Positions 5,692 through 62,852 of a stretch of 64,000 nt of DNA are shown here, in pieces. Position numbers and translations under genes: made by a program. Location: NCBI RefSeq assembly GCF_006345805.1, contig NC_042998.1:79670001-79734000 (forward strand). Reading direction: 5' to 3'. Under the pieces are notes generated by a model that saw nothing but the letters and a program-made list of their open reading frames with translations, had not been told where the DNA came from and ran no database searches. Source of the DNA: Octopus sinensis (Eukaryota). Positions within the stretch are counted from its first letter, which is position 1. The number at the start of each line of letters is the position of its first letter.

Positions 5692-5835
5692 CTGAGTTGG
5701 TGTTATGTGGCTAATATCTTCTGAAGCAAGTTTTTTCAAAAGTGTAGTTTTACCAGCATTGTCAAGTCCTAATAACAATAATCGTACATCCTTGTCAGGC
5801 TGAGATTTCAGTTTACGAAGTAATGCTAATAAACC
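5692..5835 (-). CDS. ARL3: ADP-ribosylation factor-like protein 3, coding exon 2 (codons 2-49)
   Basis: Minus strand tttgccag|GGT...CAG|gtaatt, 144 nt, phase 0/0. Translates [48 protein letters not shown], with P-loop GLDNAGKT, near-identical to the human ARL3 N-terminus. Later exons were not found in 1-5690 and lie off the left edge. Confidence 0.96.
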
Positions 5836-8562
5836 CTGGCAAATACAATATCAAAATAATAATTGATTTAAAATGAGATAAATATTTGCATTGCAAGTAC
5901 ATGAGGAGATGTCAATGAATGAAAACAAAGAGAAAAGGTATTGAATTACCTTACATAATTTGTTTAATGACCCTATGATATTTTGGGAAAATAAAAGAAA
6001 GAAAATAATTGAAGAGATCAGAGAAATGTGTTGTCATTGGCAGGTGATTCTTGACTGTAGTGTGTAATGGTAAATTTTCATTGTTATTTGAACACAGTAG
6101 ATTAACATAATGAAAAGAGAACTGAATTAGTAAAATAAGCTAATGGAATGGTTATACTTTATAACCTATAGTAGTTGTATTACATAAGACCTGCCAGCTT
6201 CAAAAGACCTATGGCATGGTGGCAGGTAATCCAATAAGTAACTCATTGCACTTGCACTCTGGATATGTTGATATAAGATGTTCAGCAAGTTGGCTCTGAT
6301 TGAATTTATTTCAATGCTTGATCAAATTATTGGCTGTGGTTTTCCAAATTTTTGAGGACATATTAACCTATGATTTAGGACTTAAAAATACATCACTATT
6401 TTGAAATTGTCGGAAGTGTATTTGAAGACGAGTTTGCTACTCCCTAGAGCAAGTCAAACCACAACTCAAAACTGGGAAAATTGAATGTGATTAGTTTCAG
6501 TTATTTCCAGAACTTTCTATCCATAATTATTAGCACAAGTTATTGTGATTGAGTATTCTCAGCCAGTCTTCTTCTAATAGATCTTGTAGCATGACAACAG
6601 TTGATCAGGAAGAAATCCACAAGTCCATTTCATTGAGTACACCATACCTCAGCCTCGTCTAAGTCTAGGCTGCACAATTTGTTATATGCAAACATAGTGT
6701 CTGCGTATGTTTCATCCATTTGGTTAATTTAATTTGTTTGGATTTTAGGTGGTGTTTGTGGCAAAGTTTGGAAAGCTAAATCAGACTGTATTTGAAGAGA
6801 TCTCATAGAGAACTCTGCCAATGGACTAACCAAAATTCTTTGCTGTTTTGGAAGGTGTTTCGATGTTTAATTATATCAGAATACAAATAATACATCAAAT
6901 TCACACAGTTTAAATGAGTTATGCTTCATTCTCATTAGTTTCAATCAAAAAGTATATCAATACAATAAAACAAAAATACAAGCCAACAAATGGGCTTCTT
7001 TGTAGTAGCTCAACTTACAAGGAACAGCAGCCAAACCTTCCTCAAATCACACCTTACCATGTTAAAATTAATACTTCATGTAAAATTACCATTGAACATT
7101 ATTCCACTAACCCAATCTTCACAACACAATAGACATGCTGACATTCTCAAACAGGTATAGTTTATCCAGGTTTGAGATGGGGGCTAATCATGAAATTATA
7201 CAGAAAGCATTCAAGAATAATATAACAACACATACTTTTTTTTCATGCATGCATGCATACATACATACATACATACACGCACACACACACACACACACCA
7301 CACACACACACACATACATAAGCCAACTTGTATATGTGATTGGGTGCATACTCACGCACAATTTCAAGGCTATATTGTGGACGTTTAAACATCAGATCAA
7401 CAACCCCTGATTAAATAAACCAATAACTAAAAACATTCCAGCCGTAACTTTTCTGTCCGTCTTTTGTATTTAAACATGTGTATCTAGTACTGCATTATCG
7501 AATGTGTCCGACTATTTTCAAGTATATGGGGTATGGTTTGGCTGCTATTTTTAGCACACGGAGAGACCACGTAGAGAATTTCCTCGATTGGTTGTCAAAG
7601 TTATATTTTGTGTATCCAACAAATTTAATCTGCTGTAGAGTGTAAAATGCATGTTACTATTTCGATGGATGATGTTAATGAAGGTGATGGTTATGGTGTG
7701 TGTGTATGTGAAAATATTCTAAATATTTCCACAGGTAACACGTTGTCCGCCAGCTAGACCCTCGAAAGGGGAATATTGATGGTCGAGAGAGTAAAACCTC
7801 ACATAATATGCTTTGATTATACCTGATTACGTGCTTCCGTGCTCATAGTTCAATTTTGGCTGCGATTAATTTCACTTTTCCTTCTATTATATGCAATAAA
7901 TAATTATCAACAGTTTAGTCAATAAATCTGATTCATCACCGATAAAATCTGGCCTTGCTCCTAGTTCAGGAAAAATTTCATTACAAAACTGCGATAGAGC
8001 AGGATAAAATCTACAAAGTATTATTGTTTATACTTTGGGTAATTGTTTAGTTTACGTTCGTACAGAAAGGTGAAGGAACATAACTAAATACACTGAAGTA
8101 TATATATTATCTAATACTTTACTCATCCTTGTCACCCTTCATCATCTTATTCTGTTATATACAACTGATTTCTAGCTTCGCTTGAAGAAAATGACTATTT
8201 ACTCGACTTTTAAAACTATCTATCTGTATCTCTCACACATAAATCTATATTTCTGACTGGTTATCTAGCTATCATTTCTTACTGCTTTCTTCTTTCCCTT
8301 CATAAAACAGACTTGCAGCTAAAACTACGCCTCAAAAAAGATATAAAATAAACTGGAACTGAGAAAAAACAACTAAAACTAAAATCAAAGTTATCAATAT
8401 TGTCAACAATACGTTTAGATTTTACGAACGTAAACTGAACAATTACCATACTTTGTTATATTATATTATAATTATACTATAATTATAATCTACTGAAATA
8501 CTGGAATTATTTCAGAAAAGACGCGATATATGAATTAAGATATTCATTTCATTCAAACGGTC

Positions 8563-8798
8563 GCCATCATCAGTGAGATGGCAACGGCATTCTTATAGTG
8601 ATGTTTTTAAATTGCTTTAGTAAAAACAGTTCTCTGTAGAAAGCAACAGTAACATTCGTTGATATATGAAATATATCAGAAATAATAAAAGCTAAGAAGA
8701 GTCAAGTTAGAAGAAGTGCTAAATCATAGATAAATATACACAAAAGACGCGTCACTCACCATTGTGTATTCGCCAGCGATGGTTACTATGTGACGTCA
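8563..8798. promoter_or_regulatory. Candidate ARL3 (and possibly shared ARL3/SFXN2) promoter region
   Basis: Perfect CRE palindrome TGACGTCA at 8791-8798. X-box-like GTTACTATGTGAC at 8782-8794 and GTGAGATGGCAAC at 8573-8585 (RFX half-sites). Inverted YY1-core pair GCCATC (8563-8568) / GATGGC (8577-8582). CpG is locally elevated. Confidence 0.45.
8760..8762 (-). CDS. ARL3: Probable ARL3 exon 1 coding part (initiator ATG only), followed by a consensus donor
   Basis: Minus strand gcgaatacacaATG|GTGAGT in a CpG-enriched, promoter-like region. Exon 2 starts at Gly2 in phase 0, so an ATG-ending exon is required, as in human ARL3. A rival candidate lies at 8447-8449. Confidence 0.6.
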
Positions 8799-9129
8799 CA
8801 GAAATCATTCTATGACAGACGCTTCCTCCACTGTACGAAAGTATCTCAAACGAATTTATTTCGATCTGAACGGAAAAGATATTAATATACTAACATTTTA
8901 GAGTTAACACATTTAATATAGCGAAAATTAAATATCTAATTAGAAATATTTATGCAGTGAGGTTTAGACAACATCAGCTCAATGACTGATATTTTAATCA
9001 TTGAGGCAAAAATAGAAAGTATATAGATCTTCTCTAAGCTATGGGCACATCACATTAACCCTTTTAATTCCACAATCTGGTCCATGGGTCTCTTTTGCGC
9101 AATTCGTTCTATTGTAAGTATTCGGAATA

Positions 9130-12871: not shown

Positions 12872-13789
12872 ATTTGTGGTGTGAACTAACTGAACCACTT
12901 GGTGCTGGATTGATGGGGGATTTTTTCTTCTTTGTTCGTTCATGTTAGTGTTTTCTTCAGTTAATGATTTGTATTTTAATGTGGTTAGATCCTTTATGTT
13001 TTTGGCTTTCACTTTTTGAAATCTCGATTAACAAAAGTTATCATGCAGAAATTGAGCTTCCAAATCCTGTTTTCTGATTGAGTGAAAACAAACTTCAAAC
13101 CGCAGTAATATTTTTCTAAAATTGTTTCTGGAACAAGTGAGTAACAACTTCAGATTCAGCGTGAAAAAATTACATCAAGTTACCAAATTTGAAAATTTTC
13201 CCCAAATTTTAAAACTTCAAAAGATCCCAGAGATCCACAGAAAAGAAACCCTGTTTTGTAATTACTTAACAATTGAATGAAGTCTGTTATAAGTATTGAT
13301 CCTCTTTCGTCTATTCATTTCAACACATCCATAAATTACTAACTTGTTACAGCTCACATGCTACATTTTCACATATTACATCTTGTCTGTTACATAAGTT
13401 TGGATGCTTCTTACGTTTGAAATTGGATTTGGAATCAGATTCGGAGTAAACAGGGACACTATTTTGTTTTGTAAAGTAGGAATATAAATTGCAGAAAGCT
13501 TAGCTTGCATCTCTTGCTGACTACTGAGTAATAGATATACCCTACAGTGAAACAGAAATAAAATCTTTTTTCTCTAGGATTCGTTATCGTCGAGAACGAC
13601 TGCTAATGTATGGTGTACATAGAGTAAATGGGATTAGACTTATCTAGAATTGCTTCACAACCATTATAGCAACCAAACATCCTACTCTCGTTTTTCAGTC
13701 TTCCTTATGATAGGCAAATTTCTTTTTTCTTTCTTTCTTTTTTCTTTTTGCCTATCGAATATCAGTTTGATCACAGCAACGACTTACTT

Positions 13790-14125
13790 TTGTTTACAAT
13801 CAACAAAACCAAGAAGTTTTCTCTTGTTTTATATTGGCAAGTAACCATGTCAAGATAAACCCATTGTAATACCAATGTAATTTGTTCTGTATGTGACGAA
13901 GTTGGAGTTGTACCCATAATTATGTTGTATTATGTTGTAAACTCACGTCGAGTAGTCTTTCTAACTTGATTAGCATAATCGTTGAGAAATTCCTTTTCAT
14001 TATCATATAATGAAGAATGAGCTTGCATGCGAAGGCCTGGACAAAAACCAGGCCAGATGTGAAATGCAGGTTTCATTTCAAGTTGCTTAACTAGGTATTT
14101 AGTAATCAAAACTAAATACATGATT
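13790..14125 (-). mobile_element. hAT-superfamily transposase fragment
   Basis: Minus strand ...NEKEFLNDYANQVRK... then IMGTTPTSSHTEQITLVLQWV...RENFLVFVDC, resembling the hAT D(x)TPDxSHxEQ...ERFLxFVD block. Confidence 0.65.
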
Positions 14126-16345: not shown

Positions 16346-16763
16346 TGTAACGTGAAAGGATCTATCATCGAAGCACTGGCAGGGTGTCGAGATCCTTTCT
16401 AGTCACATACAAAAATTCTTGTAGAAAACAAACAGACGAAACTCAGGTTAAAGGTGAACAGACAACTTGGTTTATTGATTCATGGTTGTACGTTGTCTGA
16501 TGGGGGAATAGACAGCCTCTGATGTATTGCTGGTGTTGGTCGTTGAGGTTGGTTGAAGTTGGTTGAAGCTGGTGTGTGGCTGTCAGAGCCAGGAAAACCG
16601 TGACCGATCGCAGTGCTGTCTTGAGCCGAAGAGAGAGATTTGAGGTTCGCGGGCTCGAGAGATGTTTTCCCGCACATGCGCATGGGGAAGACTTCCGGTG
16701 GCCACCCGGAAGTAGTCCCATTCTGCGCATGCGCGCCGAACCCTACACTGTAGCATCACTACA
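16346..16763 (-). repeat. 3' LTR (418 bp)
   Basis: Direct repeat of 21012-21428. AATAAA on the minus strand at 16471-16476. Preceded on the minus strand by the polypurine tract GGAGGGGAGCCC (16764-16775). Confidence 0.97.
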
Positions 16764-16888
16764 GGGCTCCCCTCCGAGTGCGAAGTACGGCAACCAGAAT
16801 ATTGTGGTGGTGCTGCAGAAAACAGAAGGCTTGCCGATCCCCCAGAAGACTTGGTACATACTATTATACAATAAGAAACATTTTAAAG

Positions 16889-19800
16889 TTAAATGTAAAT
16901 TGTTTTTGAAAGTTTCTTGGGCCAATGCACTGTTCTGCCCGATTTTGTAACATACGGTGTGCTCGGGGCACCCGTTGACGGCGAGGGTGGTGTTGTAGGA
17001 GCCGGTGAAGGTGTTTGTGCAGGTGAAGGCGTTTGTGCAGGTGAAGGCGTTTGTGCAGGTGAAGGCGTTTGTGCAGGTGAAGGCGTTTGTGCAGGTGAAA
17101 GTGTTGTTAAAGGTGCATAGGTGGGTGTGTCAAGGTTGTCATCAAAAGATGAAGACGTCTCAAAATGTGCCTTTTTTAAACGGTCCACGGAAACGGTCTC
17201 CGAACGACCATTTATCTCAATCGTGAAAACCTTTGGTGTGCGAGAAAGCACACGAAAAGGTCCTTTATAGGGAGAAACAAGTGGGCCCTTCACAGAATCG
17301 TCCCGAACAAAAACATGCGACCAGGTGTTCATATCCGGTGGAAGATGGGACGGTGGAGATTGCTTTCTGGGAAGCATGGGCGGAAGGTTTGAAAAATATT
17401 CCCGCAGTCTGGTGACATAGGTCGCCGGATCATGGGGCGGGGAAGTGTCTGGCACCAACATCGTACCGGGCAATGCCAGTGTGGTACCATACAGCAGCTC
17501 TGCAGCAGAAAACCCCAGGTCTGCCTTGACAGCAGTCCGACAGCCGAGAAGCACAATGGGCAGAAATTCGATCCAGGACTGTGGGTCCGAAGAGGCACGA
17601 AGAGCGGCCTTGAGCTGTCTATGGAACCGCTCAACCAATCCATTAGACGCTGGATGGTAGCTTGTGGTGTGGATATGGTGCATACCCAAAATTCGCGACA
17701 ATTCGCGAAATAGCGAGGCCTCAAACTGTCGTCCACGATCAGTTGTCAATCGGGACGGGACTCCGAAGCGAGAAATCCAGTTTGAAACGAAAGCTCGCGC
17801 AACAGTCTCAGCAGAAATGTCTGCTATCGGAATGGCTTCTGGCCAGCGGGAGAAACGATCGACACAAGTTAATAGATAAGAGAACCCGCGACTCACAGGC
17901 CATGGTCCAACCAGATCGATGTGGACATGGCGAAAACGGGCCTCCGTGGGGGGAATTGTCCAAGCGGGGCACGAACGTGCCGTTGAATCTTGGATCGTTG
18001 ACACTTGGAGCAGGTGCGTGTCCAACAAGTAATGTGCGACGCATATTCGGCCAGAAAAACCGAGCAGTGATTAGTTTGAGGGTGGCAGCGATGCCAGGAT
18101 GTGATAAGGAGTGCAGTGCTTCAAACACTGAGCGTTGATGGGTCTCAGGCACCAGTGGCCTGGGAGATCCAGTTGAAGTGTCACAAAGAATGGTGCCTTC
18201 GGCTGACGGAAGCGGAAGGTAGGAAAACTGGCAACAGGAGAACTTGGGAGAAGTTAAATCTAACGACGCCAAAGGTGGCTGCTCCTGCGATATGGCAGCT
18301 AAGTCGATAGCAGCAGGAGACGAAAGGGCGCAAACTGGAAGGCGAGAGAGAGCGTCAGCAGGAACGTTCTCTTTTCCAGGTATGTGTCGAATGTTGCTAG
18401 TAAATTGAGAGATAAAATCCAGGTGCCGAAAAGCACGGGGTGAGAGTTTGTCCGTTTTTGAAAACAGGGCAAACGTAAGGGGCTTGTGATCCGTATAGAT
18501 CACAAAATCTCGCCCTTCAAGTTGATGCTGGAAATGACGAACCGATAGATAGATCGCTAGGAGCTCACGATCAAAGGTGCTGTATCGTCGTTCAGCTGGT
18601 TGCAGTTGACGGGAAAAGAAGGCTAGAGGTCGAACATGGTCATCCACTGTGTGTTGTAACACAGCGCCAATCGCAGTGTCCGATGCGTCCACAGTCAAAG
18701 AGAGAGAAGCACCAGGAACTGGATGTGCAAGCAAAGAAACAGAAGCCAGCTCCTTCTTAATGGACTCAAAGGCTGTCACTGCCTCAACAGAGAGGGTGAC
18801 TTGACTGTCCTTTCTAGGAGGGTCCTTTAACAGCCTGGTGAGAGGTAGCAGCTTATCTGCACAACCGGGAATGAAGCGTCGGTAGAAATTGACCATCCCT
18901 AGATAATGCCTGAGCTGGCGCAAGGAAGTGGGGGGTGCGATGCGTTGAATGGCATCGACTTTTGACGAGAGGGGGCTGATTCCAGTCGAATCAATATGAT
19001 GCCCTAGAAAATCTAGGGAAGAGCGTCCGAAAACACACTTGTCGGGGTTTATGCGTATGCTATACGCGCGAAGACGCTGGAAGAGTTGAGAAAGGTGCCG
19101 GAGATGATTTTCTCGTGTGTCGCTCGCAATGAGTATGTCATCGACATAGGCAAACACAAAATCAAGACCGCGGACAACCTCATCAATGAAACGCTGGAAG
19201 GTGCTAGTAGCATTCCGCAAACCGAAACTCATATACAAAAACTCAAAACACCCAAACGGGGTAGTGATTGCAGTTTTTGGAACGTCGGCTGGGTTGACCG
19301 GTATTTGGTGGTAAGCGCGTATCAGATCGACCTTCGAAAAAATGGTACAACCATGGAGATTTGCTGTAAAGTCCCGGAGATTTCTAATCGGATAGCGATC
19401 GGCTATTGTGACGGCATTGAGGCGTCGATAGTCTCCAACCGGGCGAAAATCAGACTCGCCCTTTCGCGCCAAATGAAGGGGAGATGCCCATGGGCTGGTG
19501 GAGGGGCGTATAAGGCCAAGTTGAAGCATGTGCTCAAACTCGGCTCTGGCCGTTTTAAGTCGGTCTGGCGCTAGGCGCCGGGGGCGTGAGAATACAGGTG
19601 GCCCATTGGTGGTGATGAAATGGAGGGTCGAGTGGGTAGGATTTTCCGGTTTAAAGGCAATGTCCACTAGCTCCGGAAATGAAACCAAAAGAGAGTGAAA
19701 AGGGTCTCCAGAGGTGGCAACAAAGAATGTCGGGCTAAGGACCGCAGTGGTGGAACTCCCAGTCGGTGTAGAGAGCGACGTCGTGCTATCAAGAAGCCTC

Positions 19801-20183
19801 CGACGCCTGACATCCACCAATAGGTTAAACCTATCCAGGAAATCAGCGCCGAGAATAGGATGTGGGATATCAGCGATGACGAAAACCCATCGAAAATCTC
19901 GACGAAGGTTGAGGTTGAGGCGCAGCGAAACCTGACCGTAAGTGGTTATGGGAGACGAGTCAATAGCATGCAAGACAATCGAAGAGCGCTTGGGCTTGTC
20001 TGCAGCCAGACGAAGGGGCCAGATGCTGCAACAGGAACCGGTGTCTACCATGAAGAATGTCTTCGACACCAGATCTTTTACATAGAATGCACGATGTTTG
20101 GGAAACGAGATGGAAGAAGGTGACGTGCTCACCTCCTCCGGATTTAGTTTTCCGAGGGCTTGAAAGTGCACGGCTGGGTACAC
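16889..20183 (-). pseudogene. Gypsy pol (protease, RT, RNase H, integrase) with two apparent 1-bp deletions near 18035 and 17948-17953
   Basis: Protease FMVDTGS, RT YVDD, RNase H VDASD, integrase [22 protein letters not shown], and GPF motif. ORFs 17808-20183 and 16889-18028 join once two bases are restored. Confidence 0.93.
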
Positions 20184-20626
20184 CGATCTGCCCTTTTGGT
20201 AGAGCGACTACGACTGCGTTGTCGGCGCTCGATCGCACGGGATAGATCGTCGATTCGCCGCGTGAGCGCATCAATCCGCTCGGTTAGTGAAATTTGCGCA
20301 GGGCCCCCTATACATGCACAGAGGCCTCGCGATGGAGATGGATTCGGAAATTCCAGTATTCCATCGGCCGTCGTGGCAATCTGAATATTGCTCTCCCCCG
20401 AACGTGTGTTGCGGCGGAGGATTTCTGCTTTCACAGACGCGTATGTGGCATCCGGGTGGGGACTTATTATTAGATCCCTGATCGATGCGGCGAGTCGGGG
20501 ATGTAAGCCGGAATATAGCAGGTGCAACTGCTGCTGTGGAGAAATGGCATGTGCATCAAAATACCACTCCACTTGGGCAAACCACAGGCCCATATCCCCC
20601 GTAAATGAAGGCAAACCTGAAGCCAT
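20144..20626 (-). CDS. Gypsy gag, 160 aa, apparently internally deleted
   Basis: LPSFxGDxxLWFAQVE, IRDLI...P...Y..VK..ILRR, RSRSRS and terminal CTQPC...EN are typical of this gag group, but the ORF is much shorter than usual. Confidence 0.8.
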   Translation of the reverse strand: MASGLPSFTGDMGLWFAQVEWYFDAHAISPQQQLHLLYSGLHPRLAASIRDLIISPHPDATYASVKAEILRRNTRSGESNIQIATTADGILEFPNPSPSRGLCACIGGPAQISLTERIDALTRRIDDLSRAIERRQRSRSRSTKRADRCTQPCTFKPSEN

Positions 20627-20999
20627 GCCTTTGTCGGAAGGAATCTGTGAGAAGGGGGCAGAAGGTATGGTCTAGAAGTGGAGAGAGAACACGTGGAACC
20701 GAGAAGGCAATTCAAAATTGTGTTTGTGTGTGCACCTCGTGGGTAGCAAAAAAAGGAATAGGTGTGTACAAGGAAAACAAAATACAGAAAAGGAAAAAAA
20801 ATGAATGTGTGTGTGTTTTCTTTTTTCTTTGTTTTTTTTTTTTTTTTTGTACTGTGTGCGAAAAATAAGGCTATTTGACCCACCTCGCCGTGCTGAAAAG
20901 GAGAAAATAGGAAAATAAATGTGAATTTCCGCGCTCTTCGGCCCCAAAAAAAAAACCTGTTCGCTGTGTCTTTTTCTATCCTGTTCTTTTTCTCAACTA

Positions 21000-21009
21000 G
21001 GGGTCACCA
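21000..21009 (-). other. Primer-binding site, tRNA-Trp type
   Basis: TGGTGACCCC lies 2 nt after the 5' LTR and matches the first 10 nt of the tRNA-Trp PBS known from avian sarcoma/leukosis viruses (recalled, not searched). Confidence 0.7.
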
Positions 21010-21011
21010 AT

Positions 21012-48260: not shown

Positions 48261-48261
48261 T

Positions 48262-50408: not shown

Positions 50409-50463
<55 letters not shown>

Positions 50464-50526
50464 AAAAATTAATTAATTGTATTTAATTTTTCTATAGAAA
50501 TTAGGTGCCAGGAACAAAAGAGAAGA

Positions 50527-50678
50527 ATGTCTGACCGAATAGACCTCGACAAACCTCTATGGAACCAAGACACATTTTATGGTCGTCTAAGGTATTTTGC
50601 TTGGGTTACAAACCCATCCACATGTTTAACACCAACAAGTAAACTCTTTGAAGCTAGAGATCTTGTAAATAAATACAG
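50527..50678 (+). CDS. SFXN2: Sideroflexin-2-like mitochondrial carrier, first coding exon (acceptor at 50497 gives 29 nt of 5' UTR)
   Basis: MSDRIDLDKPLWNQDTFYGRLRYFAWVTNPSTCLTPTSKLFEARDLVNKY(R) is a sideroflexin N-terminus. It ends AG|GCAAGT in phase 2, matching the next exon. Upstream acceptor tttttctatag|. Confidence 0.93.
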
Positions 50679-51115: not shown

Positions 51116-51319
51116 GTTTAAATATATTCATTTATTTTTTCAGTAGTTTCACAGACACAGACACATACACACTCACATACATATTTAATCACACACATAC
51201 GCACACAGCTGTATAGGCCTTGCTCTTTCTACCAAACCAATATGGCTTGGAAGTTAATATTTTTTTGCCATTGCACATTTTTTGTTCTCATCCATATCCT
51301 AATTAATTCTTTTTTGTAG

Positions 51320-51490
51320 GTTGCAACAGGAACCTCCACATACAACACGAGAACAAGTTTTGAAAGCCCATCGTCTAGTTTTATCTGCCTTCCATCCTGA
51401 CTCTGGTGAGTTACAGAACTTCATTGGCAGAATGTCTTTTCAGGTACCTGGTGGAATGTTGCTCATTGGGTGTATGATTAGTTTCTACCG
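51320..51490 (+). CDS. SFXN2: Sideroflexin-2-like coding exon (171 nt)
   Basis: tttttgtag|g TTG...CG|gtaagt. Encodes LQQEPPHTTREQVLKAHRLVLSAFHPDSGELQNFIGRMSFQVPGGMLLIGCMISFYR, containing the family motifs SAFHPDxGE and GRMSFQVPGGM. Confidence 0.96.
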
Positions 51491-51576
51491 GTAAGTTCTT
51501 CCACATTGAAATGTGGCTGAATCCTATCAAATTGACTGTATTTTAAGCTTAGACAAAGTTTCAGAGTAATATGAAC

Positions 51577-51866
51577 AGCTGTGACTGGCTATATCTGAGC
51601 AGGTGTGAAAGCTCCAATATACGAGCAGGTGTGAAAGTGGCTGTTTGTGAGCAGGTGTGAAAGCGGCTATATACGAGCAGGTGTGAAAGCGACTATATGT
51701 GAGCAGGTGTGAAAGTGGCTATATGTGAGCAGGTGCAACAGTAGCTATATATGAGCAGGTGTGACAGTGGCTATACATGAGCAGGTGTGACTGGCTATAT
51801 ATGAGCAGATGTAACAGTGACTACATATGAGCTGGTGTGACAGTAGCTATATATGACCAAGTGTAG
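51577..51866 (+). repeat. 26-bp minisatellite, about 11 copies
   Basis: Unit approximately GAGCAGGTGTGAAAGTGGCTATATAT, degenerating toward the 3' end. Confidence 0.9.
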
Positions 51867-51895
51867 GTGATGTTTATTTGTGGCATGGGTGACAA

Positions 51896-51941
<46 letters not shown>

Positions 51942-53105
51942 TAGGCCCAGAGATAATTGTCGCTATACTATTCTGAAAAACTAGCCAGAGCTTAAGTACT
52001 CTATTGCATACTCTGACTACCTCTATGACCTTGTCTGTCCATTTCTCTGCAAGAAGTATTTCCACACCACCTACCCTGTTGCTGTTACCTTCCCAGAAGA
52101 TTTTAGGGCATGAGAGACAGTATCTATATATGAATGTGATAGTGTCTATATAAGGATATTGATTACAATAGTGATGGCGGTGGGAGTGGAGTAGAATTGG
52201 TGAAGGAGGAGATCAACAATGATGACAATTGTGATGGCAGTGACAGTGGTAATTGCAGTGATGATAATGATGATGATGATGAGAATGATGACTACTACTA
52301 CTAATACAAGGAAAAAGTGGACAGTGACTTCAAAGTTTCACTGGTTGTTGGCTTTGTCAGATATTCTGACAAGACTAATGACTAGTGAAACTTTGGAGTC
52401 CTTATGAACCTTTTACTTGTATAAATAAATGTGATACTCTACTTAGTTACTCTTCATTTACTCTTTGATTGCTTTTATGTAGATATAACTATTCATACAC
52501 TAAGATATATAAACATATATATAAATATCATCATTATCATATCATGTCCATTTTCCATACTCACATAGGTTAGAATGTTTAACAGGATCCACCCAGTTAG
52601 AGGACCCTACCTTTCTCCAATGTCTCAGTTTTGGCATGGTTCCTACAGCTGGATGCTCACCCTAATACCAAATGCTTTACAAAGTGTAGTGGGTGCATTT
52701 TTCTATGGCACCAGCACTATACAGGTTGCTTCATCATCAGCAAGACAAAAAGAGTTTTCTTAAGCCTTGCATTATTGCTGCTTGATTCAATTTACCAACC
52801 ACTGAGTTACTGAGTGCTTTGTTTTTGTGGCACCAATGCTAGTAGAGGCATCTTGTAGTTCACAAGGTGAAAAAAGGCTCCTTTAGCTGAAAGAATAGAA
52901 GAAAGTATGATGGAAAAAAATAATTTATTGTGAGGAGGATAGTAAGTGGACAGAGTAACAGAAGTAACAGTGTGTGTGTGTGTGTGGAGGATAATTTAGA
53001 AGAAGAGGAAAAGGAGAGGGAAGGAAACTTCACATAAATTATTTTTCCAGAACATAAAAGGAAATAGAAATACTGAAAATATTTTGTTTTGTTTTCATTT
53101 TCCAG

Positions 53106-53204
53106 CACAAACTCTGCTGTGATTTTTTGGCAATGGGCCAATCAGTCTTTCAATGCGCTTGTGAATTACACCAACAGAAATGCAGGATCTGACATATCCC
53201 AAAA
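53106..53204 (+). CDS. SFXN2: Sideroflexin-2-like coding exon (99 nt)
   Basis: ttccag|c ACA...AA|gtaaga. Encodes TNSAVIFWQWANQSFNALVNYTNRNAGSDISQ, the sideroflexin signature WQWxNQSFNALVNYTNRNA. Confidence 0.97.
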
Positions 53205-53694
53205 GTAAGAATTTACATATTTCTGAAATTATTTTAAAAGAATCTACCCTTATATATTTTTATAGTTAGATTACAAATGTATCAGAAGAGGGAATAAAAG
53301 TGTGTAATTTTAAAAATTTTATTTAGGACATTAGTAGTAATAATTCTGTTGTTTCTTTTTTTTTATTATTATTATTAATGCATCCTCCAAAGGAGATATA
53401 CCAATCTTGTCTCTTTCAATATGCAACTCATATCATGAAAACATCATCGCACCATACTCCACTTTAATCATGAGCAGCACTCAGCTAGACCTCTCGAAAT
53501 AACTCCAATTGTTGGGTTTCACTGTCTCTGAAGATCTGGCAAAAGCACATTCTTAACATAGCTAGGCTTGCACCCCAACAACTGGCCCTTTTCTTCATAG
53601 CCAGAAGATACTTCAGCCTCCAAAATTACTGATACTCTACAAACTTGGGTAAAGTTCACAATAGAGAAATCCAGGAAAGGACTGTCTCACTGAT

Positions 53695-54898
53695 TACATT
53701 TTTTTTATGCATTTGTGTACATTTAAACTAATTAAATATTATTTTACAGAATAATAGAATTAAAATTTCTTTGATTAAAACCTTTTCTAACATGGAAGTA
53801 TCCAAAGTGCATTTAAGGCACATAATGTGTTATGAGTACAAAAAAGGAAACTCTGCAGCTGAAGCGACTCAAAACATACACTCAGTTTATGGGAAAGAAT
53901 ACTTAAATGAAAGAACTCGCAGAAGATGGTTAGCAAAATTCAGAAGTGGAGATTTCAGCCTTGAAGATGAAGATTGAACAGGACGTCCAGTTGAGATTGA
54001 TGATAAGCTTCTTGAGGCATTACTTGAAGAAAATCCTGCATTATCAGTTGAAGAATTGGCAATAAAGTTTAGTTCAAACCATACAACTGTTCATCATCAT
54101 CTTCAACAACTTGGAAAGGTTCCTAAACTTGGAAAATGGGTGCCTTATGAATTGCTTGAAAGCAACTGCAAATCCCAGGCTGACATCTGCTCTTCTATCC
54201 ATTCTTGCGAACTCTTTTCACCCTTTTTGGATAGGCTTGTGACTGGTGATGAAAAATGGATCTTCTATCGAAATGTTAAACGTCATAAACAGTGGCTTGG
54301 TAAAAGGGAAAACGCTCAACTACTACCAAGAAGAGAACTTCATGGAAAAAAGGTTCTTCTCTCTATCTGGTGGGATTGCAAAGGAGTAATTCACTTCCAA
54401 TTGTTACCACTTAATGCAACAGTCAATGCTCAAGCCTGCTGTCAGCAATTAGAGTGTTTGAACCAAGCTTTGAAGAAAAAAAAGACCTGCTTTAGTGAAT
54501 TGAAAAGGAATGATGTTTCATCAGGACAATGCGCGACCTCACACTGCAAAGATCACATCACAGAAGATCAAAGAACTTGGTTGGGAAAAAATTCCTCATC
54601 CACCTTATTCTCCCGACCTTGCTCCTTCAGACTACCATTTCTTTCGTAGTTTACAGAATCATTTGGGGGACATAACTTTTGAAAGCCAGGAGGAGGTCAA
54701 AACTGACATTTCAGAGTTGTTCGCTTTGAAACCAAAAGAGTTTTATATTGATGGGATTAAAAAGCTTGTAAATAGATGGAAGGAAGCCATAGATAATCAA
54801 GGAAAGTACATTGATGATTAAATTTCAATTAAATATAACATTTGATTACTTGTTTTCTTTATTCAAAATTCAGACAGAACTTATGGGATGACCTGATA
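53695..54898 (+). mobile_element. Mariner (DD34D) transposon, transposase pseudogene 53792-54821, in an SFXN2 intron
   Basis: GKWVPYEL, VTGDEKWI, HQDNARPH and YSPDLAPSDYHFF motifs. One in-frame TGA (53975) and one frameshift at an A-run (~54480). The right TIR ends acctgaTA at 54898; the left TIR was not seen. Confidence 0.95.
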
Positions 54899-55347
54899 GT
54901 TCAAAAGCACCACTTTATCTTGTTTTGTCATTGATATTTACCTATTGATGACCATATCACCAAAAGATATACATATATATGTGACAATTGTTATATGCAT
55001 GCTTCAGTCCTTAGGACCATTGGATCCAGTCAAACTGTCCCATCCGTGTCAGCATAGAACATAAACATTAAACGATGGGGAACTTGATTACATGACCTAA
55101 ACATAAATGGTAGGGTTGCCCCTATATAGTAGAATCTGAAGAAACTGATGATGGTCTGCATCATCTATCATTAGTCAATAGAGGAGTGCTTAGAAGAGTT
55201 TGGTGAGTTCTTTTGATATGATGAGTGAAGAACTTAATATTTTAGGTCTTTTTTTTTATCTCATATTGAAAAAAAAAGAAAAAAATATATTGTTTGTGAC
55301 TTTGATTTTTGTATGTTCTTACTATTTTGAAATATTTCTTCAAACAG

Positions 55348-55426
55348 GAAGCTGGCTATTGCTTATGTCAGTTCAACTACATCAGCTTTGGTTGCAGCTC
55401 TTGGACTCAAGGCTATCTTAGCTCAA
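55348..55426 (+). CDS. SFXN2: Sideroflexin-2-like coding exon (79 nt)
   Basis: caaacag|g AAG...CAA|gtatgt. Encodes KLAIAYVSSTTSALVAALGLKAILAQ. Phases 2 and 0 fit the neighbouring exons. Confidence 0.93.
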
Positions 55427-56497
55427 GTATGTCTCATTCATTCCTGCAATTTCTTCTTTTTTAATCGTTTGTAACTTCAAAGACAAGTGAGATGTTGACA
55501 CAAACTACATTTCCATAAACTAAATACTTTGTTGTATCCAGTTTGTTTTTCTTATTGATATGTATGTTCAAATCTCATCCAGCTCAGCTTTGCTATTCAT
55601 TTTTGACTATATTAAGTACCTTTGATGATAGGTTCACTTGGCCATAGCTATCCTGGAGTTCAACAACAAGTATTATCATTTCTAGTGTTGTGGCCCATAT
55701 TGTTCCAATGCATGGCAACCTCAATAGTTCAGGTGGCATGAAAAATGCATCCAATATATGCTATAAAGTGGTTGGTGTTAGGAATGACACCCAGCCCAGA
55801 AACCATGCCAAAGCAGACATTAGAAAGCGGATGCAGTCCTTAGAGTCATTAGACCCTCAAACCATCCAACCCATGACAGCATGGAAAATGGATGTTAAAT
55901 GAGGTGGGAGAGCAATGTAACTACACACATGCTATTGGCAATTTCTTTTCCTTCTTTGGACTTTTCCCTTTCTCCTTTCCGACAAAGCACTATGCTTAAA
56001 ACGCCAAACTCTCTCTTTTTACTGAGCATCAAGCTAATACATTTCTTGTGCACATCCTCTTGTCCATTAACTTTATTCATTTATTTGAATTGACTAAATA
56101 TATATACATGCCTGTATCATCATCATCATCATTTAACGTCCGCTTTCCATGCTAGCATGGGTTGGACGATTTGACTGCGGTCTGGCGAACCAGACTCCAA
56201 TCTGATCTGGCAGAGTTTCTACAGCTGGATGCCCTTCCTAACGCCAACCACTCCGAGAGTGTAGTGAGTGCTTTTACATACCACCAGCACGAGGGCCAGT
56301 TTGGTGGTACTGGCAACGGCCATGCCCAAATGGTGGAGTAAGAAGAAAAATAAGCGAAAATGCACATTGGAAATCAAAAAAGTAAAGGCTTTTTATGAAA
56401 AGTAACGATAGACATATACAATTAGATGAACTTTATATTTTTGTAAAATACTATAATCAAAAACATGGAAACTAGACCATGTTTTAACTTTATTCAA

Positions 56498-56559
<62 letters not shown>

Positions 56560-57924
56560 GGTCTAGTTTCCATGTTTTTGATTATAGTATTTTACAAAAA
56601 TATAAATTTTTTTGCAATGTTGAAGTGTGTTAAACATTAAAAAAATATTTTGCAATGTTCATAAAGTTCAATTAATGCTTTCATACACTCGTAGTAATCA
56701 CCAGATTTCAAAATGTATTTAACTGACAGATGAGTTCTTGACAATTGTAGTAAAATGACTGACTTCTTCCTTTTTGAACCTCTTAGAAGGCTCCAACAAG
56801 CTGAATTTTTGCAATACAGTTTTGACCAATCTACATGCACCTTAAATGCCATGGTTTTCCAGGCATTCCGATATTACTGGCATAGATCTCACCTTTATTG
56901 TAACCAATTAGTTTGCGATTTACATGTAATTGGTTTTATGAGTGAGCAAACTTAGTTGGTTTTGATCATTTTTATTTCAGTTGGTGGGAGTCTTCTATAA
57001 TTTGTTTATATTCATATGTTAAAGATATTTTTTAATCCACATCATTAAGTGGTTGTTATATTATTGTTGTTATTTCCATTCAGAACACAGGTTTATACAT
57101 ATAGAAGTTATAACAGACAAGAAAGATAGGGAGTATATCTTAAACGTAGTTGGGGGGGGGGGAAGAAGGATCCTAAAACGTAACAGCTAGCAAAAGAAAG
57201 AGGTGAGTAAGGGAAGTGAAGAGGAACACAATGTTAAAGGACGCTATCAAAGTAACAAATAGGGTGAGAAAGGATACTTCGCATAAGTAAAGGAAAAAGA
57301 AAGAAAGAAAGAAAGATAGGTGGCGGAATATGTGTAACAAATGTACACAAAATAAAATTACATGTATATGTGTATACGAAAGTGTATATTAGTATAAATA
57401 CACATATATGCTCACATTTATAAATATATGGAAATATGCATGTAAATACACATCCACACAAATATAAGTGTATACATGCATACATATACATCCATGTATT
57501 TATGTGCACAAGTATAAACATACACACTTACTTACACATATACATAGGCGCACACATACGAATATATATGCATGCCAACAATACAGACATCCACATAAAA
57601 ATATATCTAGGTCCTGACATATATATACAAACAACTTTTTTTTTAAAATTTGCTGAGTGTATAATAATAAAAATCGGATAAAAGACATGCAAAATAGAAC
57701 ACCATATATCAAATTATCTATAAATATAAGGATTAAATTGGTTTGTAAAATACAATAAAATGAAATAAAAATAAAATAAAATCTTAAACATGAAAATAAT
57801 ATATACATATAACAGTTGAAGGTGTTCTTAAGAAATACATCGAAATATATACAATATCTTTGCAATGTGAAATAAACCATGCATTGCGAGATACAAATCC
57901 AACAGTGGGATTGAAAACTAGTTT

Positions 57925-58625
57925 AAGATTCAAAAAATATATACTATCCATATGGTATATTGTTAGCCAACATTTTGAATTTTGTTGCATGTCTGCAGGA
58001 ATTCAAGAGTTTGCGTCTTTGATTCAAAGCGCTTTTGTCCTGGAATAAAATATAAAATTTTTCCAACAGACATAAATCACATTTGATGGATCTTTTATGC
58101 GTACTGTGTCTGTAAGGTGATGCTCTATCTAAAATTCTCCATGTCACATTGAAAGGCCAGGTTTCATTTTGTTTTAATTCCCAGACATATTTTGCCAGGG
58201 TGATCTTTGTCCTATTTTCAGGGTATCGGAAGGAATTTCTATGAGAATAAGATCAGGTTTTGAAGGAATTTTCAGAAGCCCCTGTGTAAGTTCTATATTC
58301 GTGTGAGCCTTCTATCTACTTTTAGGCTCTATACACAATTCCTTTCTCCAGACATTTTCCTTCCAATGGACAGGAGGTCCCATCTTTGGAATTAAAATTT
58401 TTAGGAAAAGAATCAGCACTATGGCTATTTGCAATTATTTTATTGTTGTGTTGGTTAATATAAGAGGTGAAGTTTTTGCAACAAGAATAGCTGATCTTAA
58501 GTATTCTTCTATTAAGTATTCTATAAAACTTATGGTTAGATTGAAAGTGCGAGGGATATTAACACAGTATATGGGGATTGAACAATAAGTGTAAGCCAGT
58601 GTCAACGGTGGTTCCAGAAATTTCA
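57925..58625 (-). mobile_element. Penelope-like element 3' fragment (GIY-YIG endonuclease region)
   Basis: LKISYSC...SCPLEGKCLEKGIVYRA...TWRILDRASPY...KCDLCLLEKFYIL...LNQRRKLLNSCRH. Confidence 0.85.
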
Positions 58626-58803
58626 AACCAGAAACAAAAGCCTAGAAGATGAGCCTCGTCCTGGAAGATCTGTAGATCTGCAGTCACAAAGCAAGCTTCT
58701 TAGATCACTCGGCCATGTCTACATCTATTTTTCAATATTTAGTTTTACTGTGAGTTTAAACTTTTTTGTTTTATATCTTTTTTTTTATTTTCATCTTCTG
58801 TAG

Positions 58804-58889
58804 CGCACAACTGGCATATTGCAGCGTTTTGTTCCTTTCACTGCTGTTGCAGCAGCTAACATTGTAAATATTCCTTTAATGAGACAAAG
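58804..58889 (+). CDS. SFXN2: Sideroflexin-2-like coding exon (86 nt)
   Basis: cttctgtag|CGC...AG|gtaaaa. Encodes RTTGILQRFVPFTAVAAANIVNIPLMRQ (motif RFVPFxAVAAANxxNIPLMRQ). Confidence 0.97.
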
Positions 58890-59759
58890 GTAAAAAGTTT
58901 GTCATTTATTTGTCCTTTTGTTTTGTCTGTATTAACTACTGATATTGTAATCTAGGCCTCATTTTTAATCTATCTTACACCTGTAGAGGAAATACATGGC
59001 TACCTTGCATTATAAAATGATGGATGGTAGTAAGTGGAAAGAAGAAAGATGTATTGGGTCACCAGAGCAACATGACTATCTCTATCTTCTTTCCACCTAC
59101 TCTCACTCACCAGTGTTAATGTGGTGTAATCATGTATCTCCTTTATAGCGAGACAACTGTGCTCATCCCTCTTCTCATTCTTTAGCCTCTCAACATCTGA
59201 CATAAAGCCAAATACACCCCCCATTCAGTTGAGGGAGCTTTTTTTTTCTCATTTCTTTTCTTGCCTTGCAAGTTAGTCAGGAACCTCATTAGTGCCAGTA
59301 GCACAAAAAAAGTACCCAGTACAGGCTGTAAAGTAGTTGGCATTAGGAAGGGCATCCTGTCATAGAAACCATGCCAAAGCTAACATCAGAGTTCAGTGCA
59401 TTCCTGTGATTCATCAGAGCTTATCAAACCTTCCAACCTATGCCAACATAGAAAACAAACATTAAATGATGATGATGACAACCTGATTTTACTCATACAA
59501 ACAAGCTATGTTTCCTACACACCTGTTCAGTCTGTTTCCCATGTACATAACGATATATTTAGTGTGGACTTCTCATAACTTGTTTGTGTCTTACACCTGG
59601 TCTGTAAACTTGTTACATAATTTTCTTGTGTGTGTGTGTTACTGATTCTCTAGTTTCTTGCTCAAATTGCCATTGTTGTCTCATTGTTGTTTTAACCCAT
59701 TTTTAACCAGCAATACAACTTCAAACTATCTACTTAACATAATACTAAATCTCCCTTAA

Positions 59760-59978
59760 CCCTTTAGCATTTAAACTAGCCATATCCAGCCCAAATGTTC
59801 TGTCTGTTTCTTCTTCAAACCGAACATATCCAGCCTCTCAAACCTACCTTCAATGTCATTCTAAAAATGAACAATCACATCATTGAGATCTTGAAGCTAC
59901 AAGATAATGCATGATTAATTCAAAACAATTTGAGTAAATAAACATTACATTTGACGAAGTAGTCTGAAAGCTAAAGGG
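59760..59978. mobile_element. piggyBac-like MITE (219 bp)
   Basis: TTAA|CCCTTTAGC ... GCTAAAGGG|TTAA terminal inverted repeats with a TTAA TSD. Confidence 0.85.
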
Positions 59979-61194
59979 TTAAATGATGTCTTAGCATTTT
60001 CATTTTAAAGACCCTAAAGAATTCATTAAGTTGTTAACCAGACCAGCCATTAATAAGTGAGTAGAATAGCCAACATCTAGAAAGATGGTTATTTCAGTCC
60101 ATAACAGTCAATCAGATATATTATTTATATTTCTAGTGTTGGACTGATTGGTTCAGTACCTTAGATATGTAGACTTAATGTGTTCAACAAGTGTCACCCC
60201 AAACAAATGCTGTCGATGATTGCAAAATAAGCTGGGTGAAAAATAGCAATAGATCTGTTTCTGAGACAAGCCACTGATGAAATAATCAGTTGCTGCAAGA
60301 TAGCCCTAGACATCCATATTCAAATATTCACCCAACAGCCAGTCACCTTTCTACTTTGTTTCCCCCACCCACTTATCTCAATAATTCACTACACTAATCC
60401 CTTTCCTTTCTCCAGTTCCCTGCCATATTCCCCCTCACCACCACCACCACCACACCAATCACTTTCTACGTTATTACTCTGTTACTCTCTCCACTACCAC
60501 TTACTTTATCACAACAAATCTGTTTCTCACATATTACTTTATCCTTCCTTATCACCCACCTAGAATACTCACACAATCTCTCTTCTATTCTCCTTCAGCT
60601 ATAGGAGGCCACTTTAGACCCTTGGTCTTGCAAGTTATGAGCCAATCTTCACTCGTGCTGGTGCCATGAAAAAAAGCACCTAGTATACTTCTATAGAATG
60701 GTTATCATTAGGAAGGGCACCCAGCAACAGGAACCTTGCTCTTATAGATATTGGAGCATAATGTCATCCCCCAAATCCTCAGATTCTATTGAACTGTCCA
60801 ACCAATGCCAGCCTAGAAGACAAACGTTAATAACAATGGTGGTTATGGTTATGAAGAAGACGAGGAGGAGAATCAGTCATTGCTGTTTTGTCCTAAGTCA
60901 TTACTGATCAAGCAGACCTTTGATGAAATATATTTCAATCTTGTCCTATGTTGTCCTTATTGTATCTATAATTACATTATCTCATATGCTCTTTCCTTTG
61001 TTCAGATGATAGGGTGATTTGAATGTTATTTCTAGCAGGCTGAGTAACTACAGTGAGTCTTCCTTGTTGGTTTAACTGATATACTTAGTGTAAATTATGA
61101 GTGAATGTGTGTGTTAAAGATGGCATCTGTGCAAGTTGCACACTTCAGTTCTAGTTATGACAAATTCTAATTCTATACATATTTCTCTTTCTAG

Positions 61195-61255
61195 TGAATT
61201 TCTTGATGGAATCATTGTGTATGATGAAAATAAGAATCCTGTGACAACATCAAAG
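61195..61255 (+). CDS. SFXN2: Sideroflexin-2-like coding exon (61 nt)
   Basis: tctttctag|t GAA...AAG|gtaatt. Encodes EFLDGIIVYDENKNPVTTSK. Confidence 0.93.
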
Positions 61256-62785
61256 GTAATTAGGCAATAATTGCTGAATTTAATATTGTATGGCAGATCA
61301 TTAGCATCATGTTTTATATTAATATATACACTTGAAACAGGTTTACATTAAGATATCAGTATGTATAATATTTATAATAATCATCATCATCATCATTTAA
61401 CATCCACTTTTCCATACTTCCATGGGTCAGATGAAATTTGTTGAGGCAGATTTTCTACAGCTGGATCATCTTTCTATCGTTAGCTCTCACCTGTTTCCAA
61501 GCAAGGTAATATTTCTCCATGGCCAGGCATGTTTTTCTCAGAAAACTGGAAACAAACCACCTTGAAATGAGGTTCATTACAGCTGTTTCAGATGCGTTTT
61601 TTTATTAATGAACAAATCAATTACATCATGAAAAACACATTTTCTTTAGGTCGATTGAAATTTAAATCTAAAATTTAACATTTAAGATTTGGCTTGGAAA
61701 GAATAAACGTTGACTCCTTCAACACATGCACATATATGTGTTGACACATACCAAAAGACTGCACTAGGCTTCAATGTCTATTTTGGTATGGTTTTTATGG
61801 CTGGATGCCTTTCCTAACACCAATCACCTTACAGAGTGGACAGTGCTTTTTACATAGCACCAGCACTGGCAGGGCCTGTTTTGGTATGATTTTTACAGCT
61901 GAATGCCCTTCCAAATACCAACTACTTTACAGTGTGGACTGGATGCTTTTCACGTGGCACTAGTACTGGTGGGGATCACCAAGTTACTCACAAGACAAAG
62001 ATCCTTTGAGAGGCGAGGTGCATTGGAAGAGCTGGCCTTGTGCCAGGTGTGATGAGAGGTTAGAGTGTGATAGAGGACAGAAACAGGCGTCTTGCTTGAG
62101 AGGAGATATATGGTTATCCAGTCGGAGGGAGAGAGCAAGAGATTGAGAGAGAGTGTGGAAGAGATGTATGTGTTTGTCCCACTCCCACTGCTTAATAACC
62201 AGTGTTGATTTGTTTATGTTCCCGTAACTTAATGGTCTTGTGAAAATAGATCAATAGAATGAGTACCAGCCTGGGGTCAGTTTGTTTGACTAAACTCTTC
62301 ACAGTGATGCCCAAGCATGGCTGCAGTCTAGTGACTGAAACAAGTAAAGAATAAAGGACTTGAAAAAGGGAAAGAGGGAGATAGAGAGAGGGGTTGAAAG
62401 GGGTAGAGAGAAAGAAATTTATTAAACACTGATAAAGTTCAGTGCAGATGTCAACTTCAGCTTAATCCTTTCAGGGCGTTGTTGTTATTTATCCCCAGGT
62501 CAAAAGTGTTCCATATATGACCATAGCATTTTCTTCATATCTTTAAATTACATTGTCCAATTTCTTCTTTCTTTTTTAAGACAATAAATTGTGATTTCAG
62601 AGGGACATTACTATCATTTCTAGCAAGTTGTGAGACTCATACAGGCTTTCTTTTTGGCTGAGGGGTTATGCCAATACATAAGCACTAATATATATTATAT
62701 CTCTACAGACTTCATTACTTTTTCTTTTCCTGACATTTATATTGTATCTGTTATAAAATTAATAATTTTTTCTCCTTATTACCAG

Positions 62786-62852
62786 TATGCTGCTGTCAAA
62801 GGAATTAGTCAAGTGGTATTCTCAAGAATTATAATGGCTGCACCATCAATGC
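62786..62852 (+). CDS. SFXN2: Sideroflexin-2-like coding exon (67 nt); the gene continues beyond the window
   Basis: ttaccag|TAT...ATG C|gtaagt. Encodes YAAVKGISQVVFSRIIMAAPSM. The seven exons sum to 715 nt in a single frame. Confidence 0.95.

Follow-up and report, generated by a model that had tools for sequence, protein, structure and literature searches.

How can two genes that are read in opposite directions share a promoter when their start codons lie 41,764 nucleotides (nt) apart? This question is raised by a stretch of 64,000 nt from the genome of Octopus sinensis (NCBI RefSeq assembly GCF_006345805.1, contig NC_042998.1, positions 79,670,001 to 79,734,000 of the forward strand; referred to here as the window, in whose numbering all positions are given), in which the gene of the ciliary GTPase ARL3 on the minus strand and the gene of the mitochondrial carrier sideroflexin-2 (SFXN2) on the plus strand are divergent neighbors, with the interval 8763-50526 between their start codons. 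Our analysis suggests that ARL3 and SFXN2 are probably transcribed outward from one short, shared promoter. O. sinensis has kept the ARL3 and SFXN2 orthologs as an ancestral head-to-head pair. According to our model, a single-copy promoter of about 350 bp (8763-9113) would fire both genes outward. Exon 1 of ARL3 ends with its ATG (8762-8760), and the opening exon of SFXN2 would be non-coding and splice from a donor at 9113/9114. A short distance upstream of the ARL3 ATG, this region bears a cyclic AMP response element (CRE; TGACGTCA) and an RFX half-site that are conserved from hemichordates to molluscs. The 41 kb from the promoter to the ATG exon of SFXN2 would be an intron in the 5' untranslated region (UTR) that holds a few small, poorly conserved alternative 5' UTR exons and has absorbed long terminal repeat (LTR), long interspersed element, short interspersed element (SINE)-like and microsatellite sequence, including insertions younger than the split of O. 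sinensis and O. vulgaris.

The minus-strand gene is the ARL3 ortholog. Its assembled 166 residues were 100% identical in a database search to "ADP-ribosylation factor-like protein 3 isoform X2" of O. sinensis and 80 to 84% identical to ARL3 of vertebrates, hemichordates, spiders and snails; the named proteins among the best 120 matches are ARL3 from many phyla (76 to 94% identity), with PF00025 on all. Amino acids (aa) 2-49 are encoded in a single exon, which is the conserved ARL3 gene structure, and the ATG is the last codon of exon 1 (ATG/GTRAG), an arrangement kept in eight species, including Octopus, Argonauta, chiton, Haliotis, Lingula, Ptychodera and deer. The 5' UTR and the transcription start site (TSS) of ARL3 lie to the right of 8762. 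An initial annotation, made from the letters, had placed exon 1 at about 8.5 to 9 kb, rightly so, since the ATG at 8762-8760 closes this exon, and it had recognized the divergent adjacency of ARL3 (minus) with an SFXN2-like gene (plus), which is confirmed; the second ATG is at 50527. The limits that it gave to the pair, 5692 and 62852, are both true exon ends, but both genes extend past the window: the other ARL3 exons lie to its left (-2058..-2108 and -4012..-4197), and SFXN2 continues to its right. On its other side, ARL3 is tail to tail with a plus-strand gene of the isocitrate/isopropylmalate dehydrogenase family (PF00180, Iso_dh; -16969 to -10150). The same tail-to-tail arrangement is present in Argonauta (locus 22738-30922) and in the hemichordate Ptychodera (locus 30115-33399), and because Iso_dh adjoins ARL3 in all three, the conserved block may comprise three genes, Iso_dh, ARL3 and SFXN2.

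SFXN2 has ten coding exons on the plus strand, seven of them inside the window and three past its end. The spliced product corresponds letter for letter to RefSeq "sideroflexin-2-like isoform X2" of O. sinensis (325 aa); its exons in the window match the SFXNs domain PF03820, which is full-length and present on all homologs. The first coding intron (50679-51319) is of the GC-AG type. A GT-AG intron instead (donor 50683, acceptor 51329, 323 aa) was considered and dropped, since the GC-AG product of 325 aa fits the RefSeq proteins of O. sinensis and O. bimaculoides and the lengths of the homologs. With the GT donor 4 nt past the GC donor and an acceptor 10 nt downstream yielding an in-frame product 2 aa shorter, alternative splicing at this intron is possible.

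Is the gene indeed SFXN2 and not another sideroflexin? Every informative name among the best 120 database matches was sideroflexin-2, the others being unnamed or generic. The genome contains four sideroflexin loci: the gene in the window, two multi-exon genes on contigs C14 and C15, and an intronless SFXN1/3-type copy with in-frame stops on a small unplaced contig (C13496:154005-155022), which is probably a processed pseudogene. In a quick tree of 94 rows, the protein from the window fell inside a clade of 31 rows (Shimodaira-Hasegawa-like approximate likelihood ratio test [SH-aLRT] 96) together with proteins that NCBI names SFXN2, spanning molluscs, arthropods, Lingula, Priapulus and the ascidian Phallusia. 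The paralog on C14 grouped with a sea-urchin "sideroflexin-1-like" protein and SFXN-1.3 of C. briggsae, and that on C15 with "sideroflexin-5-like" proteins. Furthermore, a GRMSFQVPGGM-type signature is common to the partial ARL3-linked sideroflexins of deer and Ptychodera, whereas the C14 paralog reads GRMSAQVPMNM. In a more careful tree the deer fragment joined the vertebrate-type representatives (100/96). An approximately unbiased (AU) test did not reject a single SFXN2 clade (p = 0.29) and did reject a placement of the mollusc proteins with SFXN1/3 (p = 6e-6); only the mollusc proteins were moved in the latter, so that part of the likelihood cost comes from the broken protostome clade. A sequence search of the PDB for a sideroflexin structure gave no match. 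The assignment to SFXN2 made in the initial annotation, and not to SFXN1/3/5, is thus borne out by the clade, the AU tests and the position of the paralogs, and we accept the gene as the SFXN2 ortholog on sequence evidence, with the caveat that the trees were built without human SFXN1-5.

The pair is not confined to octopuses. With distances taken between the starts of the coding sequences (CDS) and the neighbor confirmed as ARL3 by tblastn in the loci containing it, a 5'-5' pair was found in O. vulgaris (0.3 kb in the gene model), Argonauta (20.9 kb), the chiton Liolophura (1.4 kb), the abalone Haliotis (1.2 kb), the brachiopod Lingula (1.0 kb), Priapulus (5.6 kb), the hemichordate Ptychodera (3.2 kb) and three deer genomes (8.4 kb). 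Adjacency and orientation are thus kept in several distant lineages, which is the hallmark of a conserved ancient microsyntenic pair (CAMP), and since the 5'-5' pair is present in mammals, a hemichordate, a priapulid, a brachiopod and three mollusc classes, its origin at or before the bilaterian ancestor, followed by occasional loss, is well supported. The ancient linkage that had been proposed from the octopus locus therefore extends to other molluscs, brachiopod, priapulid, hemichordate and deer; in the annelid Owenia, the pair was not found within 10 kb. In human, ARL3 and SFXN2 form a divergent pair at 10q24.32 with closely spaced start sites.

What fills the 41,764 nt between the start codons? 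Open reading frames (ORFs) of at least 90 aa in the interval matched transposon domains only and no host gene domain in Pfam: gag-like DUF7041, RVT_1, RNase H and integrase at 16.9-20.7 kb, and RVT_1 fragments at 32.7-33.1, 41.0-41.4 and 44.7-45.4 kb. Scans of the interval with Rfam and for tRNAs with ARAGORN gave no matches. The annotation of the syntenic 83-kb locus of O. vulgaris, in which nested genes would be listed as they are in Owenia, contains ARL3 and SFXN2 only, and that of Argonauta calls no gene between the ATGs (20.9 kb, of which all but 0.9 kb was covered). The view that no other host gene lies in between, already taken at first sight, is in line with all of these results. At least 51% of the interval is repeat; this lower bound adds up matches to other octopus DNA (132 kb only), self-matches, genome-wide matches of sampled pieces and tandem repeats. 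Part of this DNA is young. The two 418-bp LTRs of a 5.1-kb retrotransposon are 100% identical, and the element inserted after the split of O. sinensis and O. vulgaris, because O. vulgaris lacks it at the orthologous site. Conversely, a 3.9-kb element (locus 47293-51207, corresponding to position 50310 of the window) is present in O. vulgaris alone, where it lies 188 bp ahead of the SFXN2 acceptor. The family of this element counts thousands of candidate copies in O. sinensis, and because many of them are 96 to 99% identical, it was active recently. Insertion into the interval is still going on.

The ATG exon of SFXN2 has an acceptor at 50497/50498, which reads TTTCTATAG/AAATTAGG. Three annotated isoforms begin with additional residues that can arise only if the reading frame runs from an upstream exon through the 29 nt of 5' UTR in the ATG exon. 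The isoform X1 of O. sinensis (N-terminus MGVDVLLFS/EIRCQEQKRR-M) and the O. vulgaris model use this acceptor, isoform X1 of O. bimaculoides enters 7 nt downstream at 50504/50505, and in Argonauta a polypyrimidine tract and an AG, aligned with the acceptor at 50504/50505, precede the conserved 5' UTR segment. The first of the three upstream exons of the O. vulgaris model (CAI9718226), here called E1, is identical in sequence in O. sinensis and O. vulgaris; its donor end (9113) is 351 bp from the ARL3 ATG, and the CDS of the model starts 321 bp from it. All junctions of the model have canonical splice sites in O. vulgaris. The annotation pipeline of O. vulgaris used Iso-Seq and RNA-seq data via StringTie, PASA, TransDecoder and EVM, followed by UTR updates with PASA (PMC10700109). 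Tiny exons 41 kb upstream that encode a non-conserved peptide resemble a longest-ORF call on a genuine long 5' UTR, and therefore we read the model as likely evidence of transcripts whose first exon lies next to ARL3 exon 1; the model would then reflect the main SFXN2 transcript. Of what the initial annotation had deduced about this side of the locus, the acceptor at 50497 and an upstream non-coding exon are borne out by the isoforms that splice into the ATG exon, and the O. vulgaris model supports the placement of the first exon next to that of ARL3. Its single large intron from 9 to 50 kb has to be given up in favor of a region with small internal or alternative 5' exons at four places (see the table) and a second acceptor at 50504/50505. 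One of these exons, at 47238-47265, sits in a high-copy repeat stretch (45065-47849) next to a reverse-transcriptase fragment on the opposite strand (44744-45442); it looks exonised or transposon-promoted, and translation probably does not begin at its ATG.

If the two genes share a promoter, where is it? CpG observed/expected (o/e) values of 1.43 to 1.48 at 8401-8900 are the highest outside transposons (window median, 0.41), and 8600-9520 is essentially single-copy. The region at 47-50.5 kb is CpG-depleted (mostly 0.08 to 0.5, apart from a local maximum of about 0.96 at 48.2-48.7 kb). Likewise, deer has one CpG island, which lies at ARL3 exon 1, whereas the ATG exon of SFXN2, 8.4 kb away, has no island. 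Comparison of the sequences just upstream of the ARL3 ATG revealed a composite module, which reads, in the sense of ARL3, TGACGTCA, 4 to 12 nt, GT(T/A)ACC, 18 to 30 nt, ATG/GTRAG. It was found in six lineages: Octopus, Argonauta, the chiton Liolophura, Haliotis, Lingula (with the half-site GATACC) and the hemichordate Ptychodera. Priapulus shows TGACGTAT, at a start that is annotated differently, and in deer a full X-box (GTTGCC CCT GGTAAC) lies downstream of a GACGTC core. At its frequency of 0.041 per kb in the loci examined, about 0.0025 matches to TGACGTCA are expected per lineage in a target of 60 nt, and its occurrence in the target of five independent lineages is, by our own arithmetic, far beyond chance (about 1e-12). 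The composite pattern, which was derived from these same sites, had no other match in 673 kb on both strands. A full X-box was considered for the octopus promoter and dropped, since only a half-site is present. We regard the deeply conserved module of a CRE and an RFX half-site as a new and unexpected candidate element.

How firmly do these observations bind SFXN2 to the promoter of ARL3? Several of them weigh against a shared promoter. The splice from E1 to the ATG exon rests on the automated model of one species, and the upstream ATG of that model is surely not the real start; the three annotations lead to three different upstream exons; and E1 is not alignable in Argonauta, where the alignment of the E1 region with Octopus yielded nothing but noise farther than about 100 bp from the ARL3 ATG. 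The second exon of the model, E2, has lost the AG of its acceptor in O. sinensis (TTTTTG/CC at 13745-13751 versus TTTCAG/CC at 14805-14811 of the O. vulgaris locus), while E1 and E3 are intact. E2 may be skipped in O. sinensis; either the two species differ in how the 5' UTR is spliced, or the assembly contains a homopolymer error. Finally, the exon at 47238 in RefSeq X1 could mark an independent, transposon-derived proximal promoter, and the conserved module may serve ARL3 only. It is imaginable that the adjacency is ancestral while octopus SFXN2 is transcribed mainly from a proximal promoter a few kb upstream of its ATG exon (around 47.2 kb, for example) that may derive from a transposon, that the long O. 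vulgaris model is a minor read-through or an upstream-antisense transcript of the ARL3 promoter that splices into SFXN2 by chance, and that the pair persists only since no breakpoint fell between the genes. The opening of the O. sinensis X1 CDS in exon 47238-47265, the disagreement among the three species, the missing conservation of E1 in Argonauta and the E2 without an acceptor all speak for this explanation. We nevertheless consider it unlikely, because the 47.2-kb exon lies in a high-copy repeat, the surrounding 47-50.5 kb are strongly depleted of CpG, unlike the region of ARL3 and E1, and O. vulgaris tolerates its young 3.9-kb insertion 188 bp upstream of the acceptor. Furthermore, the ATG exon has a used acceptor and is never the first exon in any model, and deer shows the same architecture with one island.

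Two other explanations concern the neighbors themselves. The region from 9 to 50 kb might hide a functional host gene, a long noncoding RNA (lncRNA) or a small multi-exon gene, so that ARL3 and SFXN2 would not be true neighbors. The Pfam screen covered only ORFs of at least 90 aa, a kind of screening that lncRNAs escape, and there are peaks of CpG o/e outside obvious transposons at 12.1-12.5, 26.2-27.1 and 28.4-29.2 kb; however, no protein-coding gene is called there in O. vulgaris or Argonauta, Rfam and tRNA matches are missing and at least half of the interval is repeat, and therefore such a gene is quite improbable. Even less credible, to the point of being hardly tenable, is that the sideroflexin is of the SFXN1/3 or SFXN5 type and that the likeness to human 10q24 is coincidental. 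This would be compatible with the backbone of the careful tree, which does not resolve the branching between protostome SFXN2, vertebrate SFXN2 and SFXN1/3, a further point to be held against our interpretation. Yet separate SFXN1/3-like and SFXN5-like genes exist in the octopus genome, the AU test rejects the grouping with SFXN1/3, the informative names are sideroflexin-2 throughout and the linkage to ARL3 recurs in eight other lineages. Transcription of both genes from one short promoter remains the explanation that we prefer. This promoter may be truly bidirectional, its sharing may be what has kept the pair together, and the ciliary GTPase and the mitochondrial carrier may be functionally coupled. 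Possible, though doubtful, is a more far-reaching version, in which the module of CRE and RFX half-site was already present in the bilaterian ancestor and drives both genes, and in which its sharing held ARL3 and SFXN2, in some lineages together with a convergent NAD-isocitrate-dehydrogenase-like gene, in place for more than 550 million years.

How does the locus compare with known systems? The closest is the mammalian pair itself. It consists of the same orthologs in 5'-5' orientation, with ARL3 exon 1 ending in ATG/GT, the SFXN2 ATG in a downstream exon far from ARL3 (8.4 kb in deer) and a single CpG island at ARL3 exon 1. It differs in that the 5' UTR intron region of octopus SFXN2 is 41 kb long and mostly made of transposons, and in that octopus has a perfect CRE and an RFX half-site, whereas deer has a full X-box and only the GACGTC core. 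The composite of the two elements recalls the promoters of major histocompatibility complex (MHC) class II genes, in which an RFX site (X1) lies beside a CRE-like X2 box bound by CREB. The parallel, no more than a lead, is that a TGACGTCA-type element comes a few bases after an RGYAAC half-site, both on one strand. Unlike in MHC class II promoters, the genes here are of an unrelated class, the comparison is one of sequence motifs, and depending on the species the two elements are 4 to 12 nt apart.

RFX factors are better known for ciliary genes, whose promoters carry X-boxes (Laurencon et al. 2007, PMC2375033). ARL3 as a ciliary GTPase fits this group, and its GTTACC/GGTAAC half-site is within about 50 nt of the ATG, the usual place of an X-box. 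The invertebrate sites are, however, half-sites that fail the full X-box consensus RYYNYY N1-3 RRNRAC (quoted in PMC2375033). By eye, it is the right half that deviates in Octopus (GTAACC AT CGCTGG), Argonauta (GTTACC AC CGCAAG) and Ptychodera (GTTACC CC GGCACA), and deer alone matches. This weakens an RFX reading of the module, as does the unchanged expression of arl3 in dRfx mutants of Drosophila; arl-3 of C. elegans is among the homologs of DAF-19 targets (PMC2375033).

As a gene pair, ARL3-SFXN2 is a well-characterised addition to an established class. Hundreds of CAMPs are known, with an enrichment of 5'-5' orientation and short intergenic distance that is attributed to shared regulation (Irimia et al. 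2012, PMC3514665). Like HSPE1-HSPD1, for example, ARL3 and SFXN2 are not paralogs and are adjacent 5' to 5' across deuterostomes, ecdysozoans and lophotrochozoans, a conservation that is explained there by cis-regulatory constraint (PMC3514665). Unlike in those pairs, the coding starts in octopus have moved to a distance of 42 kb from each other, whereas the presumed promoter has remained compact. In squid, 275 metazoan microsyntenies are retained, which are on average larger than cephalopod-specific ones, mainly through their intergenic regions (Schmidbaur et al. 2022, PMC9023564). No mention of ARL3-SFXN2 as a bidirectional or conserved pair turned up in the main texts that were searched, a search that did not take in the supplementary list of Irimia et al. 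2012, and the supplements of Schmidbaur et al. 2022 name neither ARL3 nor SFXN2.

Nowhere is selection on gene order itself seen more clearly than in conserved 5'-5' pairs, and ARL3-SFXN2 lends itself unusually well to a test: the promoter that the two genes presumably share is tiny and single-copy, and it carries a pair of factor sites that is conserved base for base in deuterostomes and protostomes. Start codons are 1 kb (Lingula) to 42 kb (Octopus) apart, and therefore one can ask whether promoter sharing, and not mere proximity, is conserved. The same range lets one ask how a repeat-rich cephalopod genome accommodates ancient linkages. If the more far-reaching version, which we consider doubtful, is correct, a bidirectional promoter has survived a 40-fold expansion of the interval, with the added DNA taken up as a 5' UTR intron, and the ancestral module would tie a mitochondrial carrier to the ciliary/RFX program. 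For annotation, the O. vulgaris model suggests that octopus SFXN2 begins with an exon 41 kb upstream of its ATG and that the N-termini of several "isoform X1" proteins arose as artefacts when 5' UTR exons were read as coding.

Table. Features of the ARL3-SFXN2 locus in O. sinensis, in window coordinates
Feature	Positions	Strand	Basis
ARL3 coding exon 3, aa 50-88	1671..1787	-	tblastn
ARL3 coding exon 2, aa 2-49 (GLLALLRKL...PTQ)	5692..5835	-	tblastn and database search
ARL3 start codon, final 3 nt of exon 1 (ACAATG/GTGAGT)	8760..8762	-	End of O. vulgaris ARL3 CDS and sequence
Putative core promoter block	8725..8860		Sole stretch upstream of ARL3 alignable between Octopus and Argonauta; single-copy; CpG o/e 1.4-1.5
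Candidate composite element, in ARL3 sense TGACGTCA (8798-8791), CATA, GTAACC (8786-8781): CRE and RFX/X-box half-site	8781..8798	-	Sequence comparison
Predicted non-coding first exon E1 of SFXN2, 3' part; GTAAGT donor at 9114; TSS at or left of 9084	9084..9113	+	N-terminal extension of O. vulgaris model CAI9718226
5' UTR exon E2 of O. vulgaris model	13751..13840	+	Mapping of O. vulgaris model
Young LTR retrotransposon with open gag-like (DUF7041), reverse transcriptase/RNase H and integrase frames	16346..21429	-	Pfam, LTR comparison
22-nt 5' UTR exon E3 of O. vulgaris model; CAG acceptor and GTAAGT donor kept in the window	25748..25769	+	Mapping of O. vulgaris model
Alternative upstream exon of O. 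bimaculoides isoform X1, beside a (CA)n run; joins 50504/50505	26983..27011	+	Isoform mapping
Decayed non-LTR reverse-transcriptase fragments	32673-33122, 41014-41415, 44744-45442	-	Pfam
First coding exon (MGVDVLLFS) of O. sinensis RefSeq isoform X1; in high-copy repeat, CpG-depleted	47238..47265	+	Isoform mapping
SFXN2 ATG exon (ATG at 50527), acceptor 50497/50498, GC donor (CAG/GCAAGT) at 50679	50498..50678	+	Exon assembly, RefSeq match
Six further SFXN2 coding exons: 51320-51490, 53106-53204, 55348-55426, 58804-58889, 61195-61255, 62786-62852	51320..62852	+	Translation identical to RefSeq; PF03820 matches
Last three SFXN2 exons, 1.6-5.9 kb beyond the window end	65659-65758, 66969-67016, 69809-69923	+	Exon assembly

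Two further repeats were noted at the locus. A pair of adjacent SINE-like copies of about 370 bp (11174-11930), 2.4 kb from the presumed shared promoter, belongs to a repeat with many genomic copies at 75 to 80% identity. Inside SFXN2, the intron between the coding exons 53106-53204 and 55348-55426 harbors a frameshift-split remnant of a mariner/Mos1-type transposase (53732-54818) with matches to HTH_48, Transposase_1 and DDE_3.

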